Shown here: positions 1-34,958 of the stretch, one piece after another | How the letters are laid out: each line of letters opens with the position of its first letter | Numbering within the stretch: the first letter of the stretch is position 1 | NCBI GenBank assembly: GCA_001179505.1 | Contig: CDMY01000434.1 | Span: 1-64,000, forward strand | DNA: 64,000 bases | Source of the DNA: Vitrella brassicaformis CCMP3155 | Lineage: Eukaryota > Protista > Chromerida | Direction: 5' to 3' | Translations under genes and position numbers: made by a program | Notes under the pieces: generated by a model | What the model was told of the DNA's origin: nothing | Databases searched by the model: none | Seen by the model: the letters and a program-made list of their open reading frames with translations, nothing else

Positions 1-1378
1 TGCCCAACAGCTCGGCCACGTCGAGCCTGCAGCTGTCGATGTACACCTTCCTGGGCAAGCTGATGGGGGTGGCCATCCGCGGCCACCACTGCCTCAACCT
101 GGACCTGCCCTCGCTGCTGTGGAACCCGCTGGTGCACCAGACAGTCACCTTGAAGGACCTCGAGGCCATCGATGCACTCTGTGCACAGACGCTCGACAAG
201 GTGAGTGGAGTGAGTCGGGTGGTGTGTTGGTGTCATGCGTGTGTGCACCGGAGGTGGTGGTGCATCCTGTGTTGTGTCTTATGTCGTGTGCAGGTGGCGA
301 ATCTGGAGGGCGAGGGGGTGACGGAGGCGACGTTCCGCGACCTAATCCCCTACACCTTCACGACGACCTCGTCTGACGGGCGTGTGGTGGAGCTGCTGCC
401 CGACGGTGAGCACCGGCCGGTCGAGTGGCACACGCGGCACCTCTTCGTCAGCCTCACCAAGCAGTACAGACTCAATGAGTTCCAGCAACAGGTACACTAG
501 TCAGACAGAAAGGCAGCAAGAGGCAACGGGTCGGTCGTGTGGCATGCATGACCGTCCATGTGGTGGTGTGTGGTGTGGTGTGGTGTGGTTTGTGTTGGGG
601 TCAGATCCGTGCGATTCGCCGTGGGCTGCAGTTGGTGGTGCCGGTGCGGTTCCTGCACTTCTTCACCGGCAGCCAGGTGGAGCGGCTCGTCTGCGGCACG
701 TCGACCATAGACATCGACACACTCAAGGCGCACACGCGATACGTCGGATACTCGGTCCGTCCACCCACCCACACCACACCAGACACCACACACCACAGAC
801 GACACCCCGTCTGTCTACCCTTTTCTCATTTCACAATTGTACAGGCGACCGACCAGGTCATCCGCTGGTTCTGGGAGGTGATGGAGGGCTTCCCGCAGAG
901 GGAGCGGCAGCTGTTCCTCCGCTTCGCATGGGGCAGGTCGCGGCTGCCTCTGCGGTCTGCTGGGCAGTGGGAGCAGGAGATGGAGATACAGCGGCCCTAC
1001 CACCACGACAGACGGCCGCCCAGGTTCCATCCGGGGCCTCCTGGTGCCGCTGCGGCTGCTGGTGTGCCACACGTGGACGAGGGCGATGTGGGTGACGCGG
1101 GCGGACCGTCTTCATCCGCTGCTGGTGGTGGTGGTGGTGTGGCGCCTCGGCGCGAGGACACCATGCTGCCGTCATCACATACCTGCTTCTTCCAGGTGCG
1201 GACACCCGCACCTCACGGGCATTCATCACACTGGCTGAGTATGTGTGTGTGCTGTGTGTACCTCTGTGTGTGTCAGGTTGACCTGCCGGCGTACTCGAGT
1301 GCGGCCATCTTGCGGCAGAAGTTGCTGTACGCCATCACAGAGGGCATAGCCATCGATGCAGGTGGGGGGGTGTCATGA
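1..1378 (+). CDS. HECT-domain E3 ubiquitin ligase, 3' part (HERC-like; 5' end outside window). Exons approx <1-200, 294-491, 605-754, 845-1195, 1277-1378
   Basis: GT-AG spliced exons give MYTFLGKLMGVAIRG..LNLDLPSLLW, VELLPDGEHRPV, VERLVCG..IDIDTLKAHTRY, IRWFWEVM..ERQLFLRFAWGRSRLP and the catalytic LPSSHTCFFQVDLPAYSS..LRQKLLYAI, all canonical HECT motifs. Confidence 0.95.
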
Positions 1379-4052: not shown

Positions 4053-5835
4053 ATGACTGACGCTCCGACGGAGCAGCAGGAGGACATCCTCCTTCGCTTT
4101 CAGGTACACACGTGGCTCACTGATGCCTCCCTCACAGAGTGTCTGCCTGACACACTGTCAGGATATCACCCATGCCGAGAGGTCGCACTCCATCCGGCTG
4201 CTCGACTCCTGCAGCTGGGTCAGGGAGAGAGAGACGAAACATGCCCCCTCCCACTCGTTGAGCCTGTGTGCTTGTCGTGTGTGATTCGTCTCAGGATTTG
4301 GAGCAGGCCGTGTCGCTTCATCTCGCCAATGCAGAGATAGAGAGGCAGGAGACCGCACCCCTCATGGCAGGCCACCACAACAACCACAACCACAACCACA
4401 ACAACACCAACAGCAGCAGCGGCGCCAACCCCAGCGGACCAGTGGCGTCGTCGGTGTCCTCCACCGGCCCTCTGCTGCAGCCGCTCCTCACCGCATCCGA
4501 CCGACCGCCCGCTTCGTCAGTCAGCGCCCCCCCGCCCGGCGCACGCCACGATGACGACGCCGTGTCCACGCGCAGCTCGGTGTCCAGCTGGCTGTTCTCC
4601 CTCGTGCACCGTGCATTCGACACGGTCGTGAGTGTGGGCGGGTCAGTGCTGAGTTTCGTGTCGCTGTTCATCTTCGGCCCGCCGAGCACATCCTTCCCCC
4701 AGATGTTCCGCAAGAAGTACGGCAACGGACCCCGGTTCCTCCCGGGCAGCTTCGGGGCAGCCGTGGCCGACGCCAAGCGGCAGCTCAAGCTGCTGGTGGT
4801 GTATCTGCACAGCGACGACGCGGCGCCCACGGCCTCGTTTTGTCGAGAGGTGCTGGGCGACGAGTTTGTGCGGTCGATGCTGGATGAGCACTTCTTGGTG
4901 TGGGGCGATGAGCTGCGGCACCGGGAGGGCGACCGGGTGGCGCGGCTGCTGCGGTGCAGGAGATACCCACACATGAGCATCGTGCTGCCCGCCTCACTCG
5001 ACGAACTCAGACAGATCGCCATTATGGTGAGGAGGAAACGAGCAGCAGGGAACGAGGGAGGGAGGGAGGTGGCCCGCCATTCTCTCTGTCTTGTCCCCAT
5101 CTGTGTCCATATATCAATGTTCAGGAGGGCGAGATAAACCGCGACAATGTGGTGGCCAACCTGACGCAGTGTCTGGAGCACATGGAGCAGCACCGGGAGG
5201 AGATCAGGCGCAGGCAGGCACAGCACGAGCACGACCGCCTCCTCCGCGCACAGCAGGACGCCGAGTACGAGGAGTCTCTCCGACTCGACGCCGAGCGGGA
5301 TAAGGAGCGGCAGAAGCAGCGGCAAATAGAGATGGAGCGGGAGGCCAAGCTGCGGGCCGCCCAGGAGGCCGCCATCGAGCGGGCCCGTGTGCGCGAGGAG
5401 GAGCGCCAGGCCATCAAGCGCGAGAGGGAGGCCAAGGCCGACGCCTTCAGGAAGGAGGACGCCAGCTTCGCCGCAAACCCGCCGCCCAAGGCCACTTTGA
5501 CCAAGATCGCCCTCCGGCTGCCGAGCGGCGTGCGGGTGGAGCGGGACTTTTTGCGCAGTGCCACCGTAACGACCCTCTACGAGTGGGCGGGCGCCCTGCC
5601 CGCCCTCACGGCCGAGAGGAAGGGGGGTGCGGTGGACGTGCCAGTGAGGTTCATCCTGGGCAGCTCCTTCCCGAGCCGTCAGCTGGAGGCGGCGGGCACG
5701 CAGACGCTCGAGGAGATGGGCCTGTGTCCGAATGCCATGGTGCTCCTGACGCAGCTTGATGATCAGGACTCGGATGAGGAGGAGCTGGTGGACGCTGAGG
5801 AGGGCGGACAGACGGCTCCTGTGGCTGTGGTGTGA
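4053..5835 (+). CDS. UBX-domain protein, FAF2/UBXD8/Ubx2-like (UBA-like, UAS thioredoxin-like, coiled coil, UBX). Exons approx 4053-4103, 4162-4218, 4295-5026, 5125-5835
   Basis: N-terminal ILLRFQ|DIT..LLDSCSW|DLEQAVSLH (UBA-like); FRKKYGNGPRFLPGSFGAAVADAKRQLKLLVVYLHSDD..FCREVL (UAS); LRAQQDAEYEESLRLDAER coil; TKIALRLPSGVRVERDF..FILGSSFPSR..TLEEMGLCPNAMVLL (UBX). Confidence 0.92.
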
Positions 5836-30402: not shown

Positions 30403-30547
30403 GAGGCCAGCAGCACCGAGAACGAAAGGAAAACCATTGGGAGACCTCCCGTATTTACAGCCTCCTGATGAGTTTTTCGCCCTGCCCTAAACACAATAAC
30501 CAAAACCAAAACAGAGCGTTAGCCTGTGATATCGCAAGCAGACAGAT

Positions 30548-31236
30548 ATGGTAAGTCGAGGGTGGCAACAGGGCATCGGGTTCACAGGCAGATCACTCAG
30601 GGCAACAAGCCAGACGTGACGTGGGAGTGGCAGAGTGTCCGCGTGGGATCTCATCTCACGGTGGCTGTTTGGCGTCGTGTTTCTGGCTGTATGTGGTTGA
30701 CTTGACTGACACAGGCGCGTGGAGCGAGCGGCAGTCAGGCAGCGACTTCAGCCAGCAGCGGCAAGGGCGGTCCAGCCACCACCATCGGAGGACAGCGCAC
30801 CACGCTCGCACGGTACACAAACAGACAGACTCGGACACACACACACAGCAAGACAACACGGATAGCGGCGGACACACGAGGAGGGAGGCGATGTTCATCT
30901 TTCTGGTCTCCTTGTCCCGTGTTGTGTTGGTGTGGGTGTAATGTCACTCACAGGCGCAACGTAGGTCGTTCGTCTGCTGTGGCGCCGAGCAGCAAGGGCC
31001 GCGGCGCCTCGTCCCAGGGCATCCTGCGGTTCTACACCGATGACGCACCGGGACTCAAAGTGTATGCGACCACAGCGAACGAACGCCCTCCACGCGATTC
31101 TGGGTTGGTTGATGTGTTTGTTGTATTGCTCAGTGGTCCGACGACCGTATTGGTGTTGTCGTTGGTGTTCATGGCGATCGTGGTTATCTTGCACATCATG
31201 GGCAAGACGCGAGCTGGCAGATACGAATCCGCCTAG
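30548..31236 (+). CDS. SEC61B: Protein transport protein Sec61 subunit beta. Exons 30548-30550, 30715-30812, 30954-31061, 31134-31236
   Basis: Spliced M|ARGASGSQAATS..TTLAR|RNVGRSS..QGILRFYTDDAPGLKV|GPTTVLVLSLVFMAIVVILHIMGK; the LRFYTDDAPGLK.GP..VLV.SL.F...V..LH motif is diagnostic. Confidence 0.96.
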
Positions 31237-31434
31237 AGGGAGGGAAGGGAACGAACCGCCACCCCAATACACACAAACGGCGGGAGAGGGGGAGGAGCGA
31301 AGGAGGGAGAGGTGGCGGGGGGAGAAGCAATAGTATCCCGATCGCACGATGGGTGCGTCCGTGTGCTCAGTTGCACACCGCGCCCCGTCGGCTCTCTTGG
31401 CGTTGCGTGCTTGTGCGATGTGATGTTTAATTAG

Positions 31435-31734
31435 NNNNNNNNNNNNNNNNNNNNNNNNNNNNNNNNNNNNNNNNNNNNNNNNNNNNNNNNNNNNNNNNNN
31501 NNNNNNNNNNNNNNNNNNNNNNNNNNNNNNNNNNNNNNNNNNNNNNNNNNNNNNNNNNNNNNNNNNNNNNNNNNNNNNNNNNNNNNNNNNNNNNNNNNNN
31601 NNNNNNNNNNNNNNNNNNNNNNNNNNNNNNNNNNNNNNNNNNNNNNNNNNNNNNNNNNNNNNNNNNNNNNNNNNNNNNNNNNNNNNNNNNNNNNNNNNNN
31701 NNNNNNNNNNNNNNNNNNNNNNNNNNNNNNNNNN
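31435..31734. other. Assembly gap (300 N)
   Basis: N run between the convergent 3' ends of SEC61B and MGMT, bordered by G-rich sequence. Confidence 0.95.
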
Positions 31735-32258
31735 GGGGGGGGTGCGTGTGAGCATAATTCACTGACGGACTCTGCATTGCATGGAGGGGGGAGGGGAGGG
31801 GAGGGGCGGGGGGGTGGGAGGGAGGGATGATCCACGCACATGTGCCCATGGCGCCTGTGTCACAACATAGACAGCCAGATCGATGGGTGGCTGTGGCTCT
31901 CTGGATTTTTGAATGGACCTTCCTTGCATTCCTTCCATGGTGTGTCGCTCGTCGTTTCAATTCAATGAATCAATCAGTTGACGGCCTCAAAAACGTCTGT
32001 CTGTCTTCACAATGAAGGGTCTGTCTATACAGTACAGCCGCACGAGCCTCGCCTCGCCTCGCCTCCTCTCTCGCATGCTTATCAGCCCATCACCAGATGC
32101 TCGCACGCATCCTTGCGGCGATGAGCATCACACGCGCGCAAGATGAAGCAACCAGGCAGAGGCACCGCAGCAGGCAGGCAGGCAGGCAGCACACATCCAC
32201 CCACTCGAAAACGTGCTGATGCCATGCCGCACATCACATTCCCCTCCTCTAGTCTAGC

Positions 32259-33054
32259 CTAGCCGTTCTTCTGTCTCTTCTTGGGCACATCATCGTTGCC
32301 ATGGTTGCCTAGGGAAAGCTGGCGCTTGTCCCCTGCCCTCACACCCGGCTGCCTGTCCTGCTCTTGTCTGTGGTCCTCCAGGGCGGTCTTGCCTGATCCG
32401 AGGTCGAAGAGGAACTCTTTTGGAATCCTGCTGTCGCGACTGCCCGGCGCCTTGTTGACCGTGACGCCCTCCTGCTGCAGTCGCCTGACCTTGTCAGGCA
32501 GATTGGGATTGTCGGGACCTGAACGGCCACCTGCAGACAACAGCCAGAGGTGAGGTGATCCAGGCAGGCAGGCAGGCAGGCAGGCCGGCAAGCGTTCCTC
32601 TTCCCCACCGAAGCCGCCGATGGTGAGGTCAGCGTTGACGACCCTGTGTCAGGGAACCGCCGGGGCGAACGGGTTTCTCTTCATCGCTGCACCACAACAC
32701 AGGTACCTCACGAGCACAGGACACAGAGATCCATCCCACCCATCCCCACTTCCACACATCCATCCCATCCCCCCAGTGCACCGCACCCACCTTACCTTGT
32801 CCAATAGCCTGGCCAGATCCACAGCCAACCGCCTCGCCCAGTGCCTTGTAGGTCGTCACCTTCCCCGCAGGCACACGCATCAGCGCCTCAAACACGCGCC
32901 GCTGGAATGGCGTGATGCGATGCGCAGACCAGTCAATAACACCTGGCGCACCATCGCCCTCATCCTCTGCTGCTATAGCCGCAGCGCTCGAGTGGCCGCC
33001 AGGCCCATCCTCAGCCTCCCCGGCCTCATCGTGGCCATCTGCACTGCGGCTCAT
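32259..33054 (-). CDS. MGMT: O6-alkylguanine-DNA alkyltransferase (MGMT/Ogt family) with in-frame TGA at the catalytic Cys (candidate selenoprotein). Exons 33054-32796, 32686-32609, 32530-32259; 202 aa, TGA is codon 99
   Basis: ITPFQRRVFEALMRVPAGKVTTYKALGEAVGCGSGQAIGQ|AMKRNPFAPAVP*HRVVNADLTIGGFG|GRSG..DKVRRLQQEGV; exon lengths 259+78+272=609 keep the frame through both introns. Confidence 0.9.
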
Positions 33055-33377
33055 GCTGTGCGGTGGCAGATCTAGACCGACTCCCAGACGGCGTGTTGGG
33101 ACTGGAGGTAGGCGCGCTCCTGTGAGCTGTAGACGAGGAGGGCGACGTGGAAACAGCACAGGTGCGAGCAGAGATGGATGGTGACGCCGAAAGCAGAGAC
33201 GAGGAGGATGATTCTGAGCCAAATTGGCATAGGCTGGCCCACGGAGCAGTGATGCCAGCCTTGTGCTTCGAGCATAAAGATGCCACGATCTTGGTAGGGC
33301 ATAGCGTGAAACCGCCTCCCAGCTCGCAACACTAAGGCAGCCTCAGACAAGCGAGCCGGCCGTTTGTGCACCTAACG

Positions 33378-34958
33378 ATGGCGACAGAGTCAGCTGAGCC
33401 CTCCACTTTGACCAACGGCGCGAAGGCTGCGGACGCAGATCCCTCCCAGGCAGCCGTCACGACCCAGGAGGAGCTGGACGAGAAGGTCAAGGCACTCGCA
33501 GAGGAGGTCAAGGTCAGCCACCACAACGCACATGTCAACTCGGGCGGGAGAGAGGCGGGCGATGAGATGAGGCAGCCGGGCACTGCGTGTGTCTCGCACG
33601 TGTGACGTGGGAGGGTGGTGGGGCATGGCTGGCGACAGATCTGCGTGTGTGCGGGTGCGGCCGGTGGGCACACCACACTCTCCCTTTGTGTGTCTGTCTG
33701 TGTGTGTGGCTCGTCAGGCGTTGCGCTCCGACTTGAATGACGTCAAGCAGAAGAGCCTGCGCAGCTCCCGCGAGGTCGGCCAGCTCAAAGTCGTCATCCA
33801 CGAGCTACACCAGCTACTCACAGTAAGCACAACATACGCCCACCCTACACACCACCCACACCACCCGTCCCTCACACCTCTCCTCCCTCTCTGTCGCGCC
33901 CTGTGTTGTTGTGTGTGTATCAGGGAAGCGTCCAGGGTCGTTCGAGTGAGGCAGCTGGGTCGTTGCCAGCTGAGGAGTCGCCCGAAGCGCAGGACCAGCA
34001 CGACGAGGACGGCCATGGCGGTGAGGGCGGTGGCGGCAACAGTGGGCGCCGACGGCGGCGAGGTCGCGGCACTGCTCGGCAGGACATTCAGCCCAAGGTC
34101 CCCCAAGTGCAGTGGAGGCAAAAGGGACTCGCTCACACGTAAGCCAAGGGAAGAAAGACGGAGAGATCCGATCCAGGTCGAATGCACTGCCATGTGCCTC
34201 CTCGGTTGGACGTGTGTGTACCTGGTGCTCAGTGATGAAGCTGCCGCCCCCAAGTCTCCCGAGGACGGCACCCCGGCCTCCCAGGCGGCCCGCGGCGACG
34301 AGAGCCATGGCGAAACACCCGAAGAGGGCGCCAAGGACGAAAACGGTACCCAACAACACAACACAACACAACACTTCGTACCATCACACACATCACCATA
34401 CCATACCTCCTACGTGTCTTGTCTTGCTGTTTATCAGGTCGGGGAGACCGTAGCGGCCGCAACCGTCGTCGCCACAACGGACGTCGTGGTGGCAGTGGCG
34501 CCAAGGGTGCCGGTGCGGCTGCTGACAAGTCCGCGTCGCCTGCCAACGCAGCTGGCAAGGGCGGAGCGGGCGGTCGCGCGTCGGGCAGTGCACCCGCCAT
34601 GACCGACCAGCAGCGGAAGGAGGAAGAGCAACTCAAGTGAGCAGAGCAGGGCGTGCCATGGGGTGGACGGCCTGTGTATGCCCTTATACTGTCTGAGTAT
34701 GTGTGTGTGTGTGTGTGTCCATCAGGGAGGTGTTCCGCAATGCCAACACGCCAGACGAGGTCAAGAACGCCATGCAGCGGGTATGCAACACAGTTACCTG
34801 CAAGGGAGAAGCCAATCAGAGAGAGGGTGTGGGGTGTGGCATGGTGCAACGCTTGCTTTTAGGCTCGTGAGTTGGATCTGAGTTATTTGGTTGAGTTGGG
34901 GGGGAAGAAGCTCAAGAAGGTGGAGGACGCCGCCAGCGCACCCTCCGGACCCGCATAA
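33378..34958 (+). CDS. Hypothetical protein with coiled coil and RG/GR-rich low-complexity segments (about 7 exons)
   Basis: EELDEKVKALAEEVK|ALRSDLNDVKQKSL..; GRRRRRGRG, GRGDRSGRNRRRHNGRRGG; final exon ARELDLSYLVELGGKKLKKVED..GPA* (TAA 34956-34958). Confidence 0.6.

Follow-up and report, generated by a model that had tools for sequence, protein, structure and literature searches.

A three-exon gene on the minus strand of the 64-kb window (the whole stretch of Vitrella DNA that was analysed) very probably encodes a genuine selenoprotein, in which selenocysteine (Sec) at position 99 would take the place of the MGMT nucleophile. The Sec insertion, the repair activity and a Sec machinery (tRNA-Sec, SPS2, PSTK, SepSecS, eEFSec and SBP2) in this genome are predictions. 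The observations are the gene structure, an in-frame TGA in DNA-type and RNA contigs, the homology across this TGA, and a SECIS-shaped fold of the RNA. A preliminary description had proposed a eukaryotic Sec-containing alkyltransferase at this locus. The proposal is supported by the TGA in the reads, the splicing, the conservation after the TGA, and the SECIS candidate in the 3′ UTR.

The features of the gene are as follows.

ATG 33054 to TAG 32261-32259, minus strand: MGMT/Ogt-type alkyltransferase gene, three exons
33055..33284, minus strand: 5′ UTR, minimum extent (RNA contigs reach 33284 in run X7 and 33272 in run X9)
32796..33054, minus strand: coding part of exon 1 (translation, RNA splice joint 32796/32686, PF01035 match)
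32687..32795, minus strand: intron 1, 109 nt, GT..AG (joint in the X7 and X9 RNA contigs; plus strand CT..AC, 109 skipped)
32609..32686, minus strand: exon 2, 78 nt, (A)MKRNPFAPAVP-TGA-HRVVNADLTIGGF(G) (contigs of X7, X9, X1 and X3, 0 differences)
32649..32651, minus strand: in-frame TGA, codon 99, predicted Sec (alkyl-accepting Cys position of the PCHRV motif)
32531..32608, minus strand: intron 2, 78 nt, GT..AG (RNA pieces 32605-32686 and ..-32526 adjacent in X7 and X9)
32259..32530, minus strand: coding part of exon 3, TAG stop at 32261-32259 (translation and homologue alignment)
31984..32258, minus strand: 3′ UTR, about 275 nt, minimum extent (X7 RNA contig end at 31984)

Contigs of four public runs were aligned to positions 30800-33500. 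The runs represent at least three samples and at least three studies, their contigs were assembled independently, and two of them (X7 and X9) are labelled as RNA. Spliced RNA contigs of 1114 nt (X7) and 987 nt (X9) were detected, with 0 differing letters against the window. Their blocks lie at 31984 (X7) or 32099 (X9) to 32526, at 32605-32686, and at 32796 to 33284 (X7) or 33272 (X9). In the mRNA of both runs, the two introns are removed and the TGA is retained in exon 2. Intron-containing contigs over 32598-33500 were obtained from X1 and X3, also with 0 differences. GTGG occurs at both ends of intron 2, so that its junction is ambiguous by 4 nt. RNA depth is zero across 31346 to 31982.

Both introns keep the frame, and the spliced coding sequence of 609 nt (202 codons) contains a single in-frame TGA, at codon 99. 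On the minus strand, exon 2 reads CG ATG AAG AGA AAC CCG TTC GCC CCG GCG GTT CCC TGA CAC AGG GTC GTC AAC. Thus, the preliminary description was correct in its reading of exon 2, in the position of the TGA (32651-32649) and the other coordinates, in the GT-AG introns and in the frame. The reads gave TGA in the DNA-type and RNA contigs of all four runs, and TGC, TGT or TGG in none of them. The locus is transcribed and spliced as predicted, and the TGA stays in the mature transcript.

The N-terminus encoded by exon 1 is acidic and of low complexity, and the MGMT DNA-binding domain begins after it (ITPFQRRVFEALMRVPAGKVTTYKALGEAVGCGSGQAIGQ). Exon 3 encodes the end of the MGMT domain (GRSGPDNPNLPDKVRRLQQEGV), followed by a tail of 65 residues with a basic KKRQK terminus; no family match to this tail was found in Pfam. 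The part before the TGA matched PF01035 with 48.5 bits (cutoff 27) over residues 49-98 and profile positions 1-51 of 81. This match stops exactly at the TGA, that is, at the residue before the active-site Cys. With the NCBIfam model TIGR00589 ‘ogt’, the same part scored 41.7 bits, which is under the whole-protein cutoff of 46.4 because half of the domain is missing from the pre-TGA part.

A HMMER scan of 1.84 billion representatives yielded 2041 relatives, and a protein word-index search yielded four relatives only. The spliced product, with X at the TGA, was aligned with 12 of the closest homologues. The TGA column is Cys in all 12 homologues, and the hallmarks HRV, GGFxG, K, L and EG follow in register after the TGA. 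When near-invariant columns were defined as those identical in at least 11 of the 12 Cys homologues, the Vitrella sequence matched 22 of 23 upstream of the TGA and 11 of 12 downstream. Downstream of the TGA, 103 codons are open. As judged from this alignment, there is no sign of decay after the TGA, and the conservation is as strong as before it. The same column counts bear out the earlier observation that family homology continues past the TGA.

The active-site motif reads P-[TGA]-H-R-V. A literal Cys is absent, and a nucleophile stands at this position only when Sec or Cys is inserted at the TGA. N91, Y69 and E133 all fall in near-invariant columns. By motif counting, we take their human counterparts to be N137, Y114 (recognition region) and E172 (C-terminal helix), respectively. 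In human AGT, N137 and E172 are active-site residues (PMC4150793). The arginine finger of canonical AGT (human R128) occupies the space that the flipped base vacates. Its column is taken by Gln82 in Vitrella, and Gln is likewise found there in 9 of the 12 closest Cys homologues. In the bacterial homologue P0005, the Gln of the same column aligns with Arg of the M. tuberculosis OGT. Gln82 is, by this comparison, a trait of the short subfamily and not a mark of decay. Given Gln82, the protein may not act on the same substrate as classical MGMT.

The protein is of a short type that consists of the C-domain only. Its closest relatives have 110-165 residues and are bacterial and protist proteins (Platysulcus and Andalucia). 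P0005, which lies in a dense bacterial gene context, is 72% identical over the query segment. Relatives with solved structures are M. tuberculosis OGT, archaeal MGMT, human AGT and ATL proteins. The gene encodes a short MGMT/Ogt-type alkyltransferase with a predicted alkyl-transfer activity. Among the best 150 of the 2041 HMMER matches, the product of this gene is the only one that terminates where Sec would stand. Since no truncated Sec-type orthologue was found in this way, no related eukaryotic orthologue was available for SECIS covariation or for a Sec/Cys pair among close relatives.

The preliminary description reported no SECIS. In the follow-up analysis, a candidate was found in the transcribed 3′ UTR, and its parts are located as follows.

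32069..32143, minus strand: candidate type II SECIS (minimum-energy fold and sole descriptor match)
32127..32131, minus strand: 5′ side of the SECIS core, G-UGA-U
32081..32084, minus strand: 3′ side of the SECIS core, U-GA-U
32113..32114, minus strand: unpaired AA of the SECIS, in a 4-nt bulge GCAA, 13 nt past the core UGA

The candidate starts 127 nt past the stop codon and about 440 nt past the UGA in the mRNA. The hairpin lies inside the X7 RNA contig, and the X9 contig ends within it, at 32099. In helix I, UCUUGCGCGC (32143-32134) pairs with GCAUGCGAGA (32078-32069) by 9 pairs with 1 mismatch. The internal loop is small, with GUG (3 nt) facing AA (2 nt). In the predicted fold the two core sides face each other, and they can form a U.U/G.A/A.G/U.U quartet. 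Helix II comprises 10 uninterrupted base pairs between GCUCAUCGCC (32126-32117) and GGUGAUGGGC (32094-32085). Beyond it stands a mini-stem of 6 bp (GGAUGC/GCAUCU) with the 6-nt loop GUGCGA (32112-32095), and no unpaired bases are found opposite the AA bulge. When folded without constraints, the whole UTR and three nested sub-windows all give this hairpin in their minimum-energy structure, where it is dominant. All elements of a type II SECIS are present in the hairpin as modelled.

A SECISearch-like descriptor was then composed, that is, after the candidate had been seen, with (A/G)UGA, a helix II of at least 8 pairs, AA at 9-13 nt and a helix I of at least 5 pairs. On both strands of the window (128 kb), it matched 32143-32069 alone. 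First-order Markov shuffles gave 1.24 descriptor matches per 128 kb, which corresponds to about 0.003 per 275-nt UTR. At the quality of the candidate (helix II of at least 10 pairs and helix I of at least 8 pairs), the shuffles gave 0.007 matches per 128 kb, or about 1e-5 per UTR, and these stricter figures are post hoc. The Rfam SECIS covariance models (cmscan, E<=10), whose sensitivity for GUGA-type elements is uncalibrated, gave no match in 30500-34000 or in 32050-32170 (121 nt). No AUGA was found in the 3′ UTR when the spliced mRNA was searched, and GUGA stands there instead. G in place of A before the UGA is a documented SECIS variant: in Chlamydomonas, Ostreococcus and sponges, most SECIS elements have the pattern GUGA_AA (PMC3473315).

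We consider it unlikely that the locus is a transcribed unitary pseudogene, in which a recent change of TGC or TGT to TGA was fixed in the cultured lineage and left a fragment of 98 residues only. UGA is otherwise a stop in the genome, as at the end of the UBX gene, the public prediction P0001 ends at the TGA, and Rfam reports no SECIS. Because the sampled runs do not differ from each other, the population data are compatible with a recent event; for the same reason, the four runs give no information on selection. However, such a pseudogene would have to carry by accident a complete SECIS-shaped hairpin in its 3′ UTR, for which the chance is about 0.3% or less, and to have kept 103 open codons past the TGA with 11 of 12 family-invariant positions. 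The mutation would also have had to strike exactly the codon at which Sec replaces Cys in other organisms. The transcript depth, which is comparable to that of the neighbouring genes, is weak evidence against gross decay.

Read-through or recoding of the UGA without selenium is a very improbable explanation. By this account, near-cognate Trp, Cys or Arg would be placed at the UGA, giving a low level of a Cys enzyme or of an ATL-like (Trp) damage sensor together with the truncated product. The UGA is followed by C, and this is the leakiest stop context in eukaryotes. The ATL proteins are also C-domain-only proteins like that of Vitrella, and Atl1 (3gva) is among the structural relatives. Nevertheless, read-through does not need a SECIS, yet one is present, and read-through usually proceeds at an efficiency of a few percent. 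Every run gives TGA and not TGG, and the codon lies in the context NPFAPxVP-x-HRV, as it does in the active Cys enzymes. An assembly or sequencing error with a true codon of TGC, TGT or TGG is refuted by the TGA with 0 differences in the contigs of four runs, spliced RNA included.

The preliminary description also stated that TGA ends other genes here. This stands for the UBX gene, which is plausibly ended by the TGA at 5833-5835, with the profile complete to 81 of 82. It is less secure for the HECT region: ahead of the TGA at 1376-1378, the profile match extends no further than position 281 of 306, and this TGA follows a GT and may lie in an intron. A reassigned genetic code was rejected for the 64-kb window, because the UBX gene ends in TGA. 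No tRNA genes were detected within the window.

If the gene encodes a selenoprotein, as we propose, its product would be a nuclear O6-alkylguanine-DNA alkyltransferase of 201 residues, which consists of the C-terminal domain only and carries Sec99 encoded by UGA. By analogy with all eukaryotic selenoproteins, the type II SECIS with its GUGA core would recruit the SECIS-binding protein and the Sec-specific elongation factor, and the ribosome would insert Sec at the UGA instead of terminating. Following the chemistry of the family, the protein would bind DNA via its helix-turn-helix and flip out the alkylated guanine. A permanently deprotonated selenolate would then take the alkyl group in a single, self-inactivating transfer, as can be supposed from the family chemistry and from the engineered AGT C145U.

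The novelty of the Sec form that the preliminary description implied does not hold: this form was already listed for prokaryotes (PMC1976440, PMC2398784) and, as ‘MDP’, for algae (PMC7539508). Among the algal selenoproteomes (2020, BMC Genomics), MDP is one of 42 listed families and not among the three novel ones; it is related to DNA repair, and its noted homologues include both Cys and non-Cys forms (PMC7539508). Like the Vitrella gene, MDP is a eukaryotic algal MGMT homologue with a UGA-encoded Sec and a 3′ UTR SECIS (PMC7539508). The Vitrella gene fits MDP by definition, in a comparison by description and not by sequence. The MDP paper contains no biochemical characterisation, and neither Vitrella nor Chromera is named in the accessible parts of its text and supplement (PMC7539508).

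In prokaryotes, a Sec-containing methylated-DNA-protein-cysteine methyltransferase was listed as a family by Zhang and Gladyshev in 2007 and 2008, from an Olavius symbiont and GOS tables (PMC1976440, PMC2398784). These proteins have Sec for the same catalytic Cys in the same PF01035 domain, whereas the Vitrella gene has two spliced introns and a eukaryote-type 3′ UTR SECIS.

The engineered human AGT C145U, with Sec at 145, is active in vivo and protects E. coli from MNNG (Haruna et al. 2014, NAR, PMC4150793). Loss of Asn137 is tolerated by this form but not by the Cys form, in keeping with a selenolate that requires no activation (PMC4150793). Both AGT C145U and the predicted Vitrella protein have Sec at the alkyl-acceptor position and an Asn eight residues before the nucleophile (N137 in human, N91 in Vitrella). 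In contrast to the Vitrella gene, AGT C145U is artificial and was obtained in E. coli through UAG suppression and an engineered EF-Tu (PMC4150793). It comprises both domains of the full-length human protein, arginine finger included, whereas the Vitrella protein is natural, has the C-domain only, and carries Gln.

The Vitrella protein shares with the canonical Cys enzymes MGMT, Ogt and Ada-C (PF01035, TIGR00589; 1eh6, 1sfe, 1mgt and 4wxc) the helix-turn-helix DNA-binding domain, the NP..(I/V)P-x-HRV active-site loop, the GG(F/Y)xG turn and the K..L..EG C-terminal helix. It differs in its predicted Sec nucleophile, the lack of the N-terminal domain, Gln for the arginine finger, and long N- and C-terminal extensions that are unmatched. 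The ATL proteins (S. pombe Atl1, 3gva; V. parahaemolyticus, 2kif) are also C-domain-only proteins, of about 110 residues, and are detectable as sequence relatives. ATLs have Trp or Ala at the nucleophile position and perform no alkyl transfer. The Vitrella codon, in contrast, is TGA with a SECIS and not TGG.

Thus, Sec-MGMT is already known as a family, and the Vitrella gene is a new, probably misannotated member of it. The misannotation had been anticipated in the preliminary description: the public prediction P0001 has 98 aa, and should be corrected to 201 aa with U99. With this gene, a DNA-repair enzyme joins the selenoproteome of a chromerid; chromerids are the photosynthetic sister lineage of the apicomplexan parasites. 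In the literature searched, no selenoprotein work on Vitrella and nothing relevant on Chromera was found. For natural Sec-MGMT, the same literature contained rows in selenoproteome tables only and no biochemistry. With a transcript-supported gene model and a defined SECIS, the Vitrella gene is a convenient candidate for studying the value of selenium to a single-turnover enzyme. Beyond that, it is an expected member of a published family.

Other natural Sec forms were sought by a DNA pattern scan with NPFAPxVP-TGA-HRV. Matches were found in one Desulfobacterales genome (L006) and in five metagenome contigs. L006 and the metagenome loci L002 and L005 are bacterial, about 70% identical to each other, and share the motif NPFAPEVP-UGA-HRV. 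In these three loci, a short self-complementary ACCGG..CCGGU repeat, recognised by eye only, follows the UGA where a bacterial SECIS would lie. L001 and L003 are eukaryote-like contigs of low GC (30-32%). The Rfam SECIS families gave no match in loci L001-L005 (cmscan, E<=10), and the SECISearch-like descriptor gave none near the genes of L001 and L003.

The Vitrella protein is 51-57% identical to Cys forms, 35-44% to other Sec forms, and 37-39% to the bacterial Sec forms. A tree of 19 sequences was poorly resolved; the Sec forms stand in four separate places, and the best tree needs four changes. The Sec forms may nevertheless have a single origin. The recoding signals and systems for Sec in bacteria and in eukaryotes are not interchangeable. 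Therefore, at least the bacterial and the eukaryotic changes from Cys to Sec were probably independent of each other.

A wider reading, which we put forward tentatively and with slightly less than even confidence, is that Sec was acquired several times, each time independently, at the suicide nucleophile within a single short, mostly arginine-finger-less MGMT subfamily: in Desulfobacterales, in a low-GC eukaryote-like organism, and in a chromerid. The last would be the first alveolate case, with a GUGA-type SECIS. If this is true, selenium recurs in an enzyme that is used once, and its benefit would lie in reaction rate, pH independence or substrate range and not in turnover. These proteins would then be a natural counterpart to the engineered AGT C145U.

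Two further observations concern the low-GC eukaryote-like organism. Its gene is a fusion of MGMT with DUF3253 and contains two in-frame UGAs. In L001 and L003, a conserved AUGA..UUCUUGAG hairpin with bulges was seen by eye.

The MGMT-DUF3253 fusion gene, with TGA at the catalytic Cys position of its MGMT domain, was detected on two metagenome contigs found by the DNA pattern NPFAPxVP-TGA-HRV. Both contigs (L001 and L003) are eukaryote-like with low GC (30-32%).

L003:11671-12309, plus strand: MGMT-DUF3253 fusion gene
L001, pattern match at 947-981, minus strand: MGMT-DUF3253 fusion gene

The domain joined to MGMT is DUF3253 (PF11625, E=3e-16). The gene possesses two in-frame TGAs; the first is the one at the catalytic position, and the other is located directly before 'PSEVAR', at position 22 of the DUF3253 profile. 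In the long ORFs adjoining the fusion gene on L003, no in-frame TGA was detected, and Cys is encoded by TGT or TGC. Thus, the code is not reassigned. The product of this gene is a candidate two-Sec fusion protein. A hairpin (AUGA(Y)AGC ... UUCUUGAG) common to the two contigs is found about 50 nt past the stop of the gene, and its stems show compensatory differences (AAUCAA/UUGAUU versus AAUAU/AUAUU). This hairpin was matched neither by our SECISearch-like descriptor nor by Rfam.

The same pattern was found in another metagenome contig (L004; 4.8 kb, GC 45%).

L004:3837-4277, plus strand: MGMT-like ORF, catalytic codon TGA (VRNPFAPLVP-TGA-HRVV)

Upstream of the motif, unrelated sequence appears to stand in place of the usual helix-turn-helix segment. 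In the tree, this ORF has a very long branch.

The Vitrella MGMT gene and its surroundings in the window contain the following features.

32804-32806, minus strand: Gln codon in the arginine-finger column, codon 84 from ATG 33054
32560-32590, minus strand: (GCCT)n microsatellite (gcctgcctgcctgcctg), intron 2
32170-32190, minus strand: (GCCT)n microsatellite (gcctgcctgcctgcctg), 3' UTR
30953-31284, downstream of the MGMT gene: short, well-expressed spliced transcript (RNA-run contigs)
539-1378, plus strand: HECT-domain ORF (profile match)

The Gln is Gln82 if the Sec codon is set as residue 99 and positions are numbered backwards from there. Among the 12 closest Cys homologues of this short MGMT subfamily, 9 have Gln at this position in the alignment as well. 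Base flipping or substrate choice in the subfamily may therefore differ from canonical AGT.

Many contigs from all four sequencing runs break or branch at 32169-32190; thus, the (GCCT)n repeat is dispersed genome-wide. In the downstream transcript, 31062-31133 is a plus-strand intron of 72 nt with GT..AG ends, and RNA coverage between this transcript and the MGMT gene (31346-31982) was absent in both RNA runs.

The preliminary description took the HECT gene to end in TGA. The profile match stops at position 281 of 306, and the sequence gcag|gtgggg lies before this TGA. Therefore, the TGA is probably intronic and not the stop of the gene.
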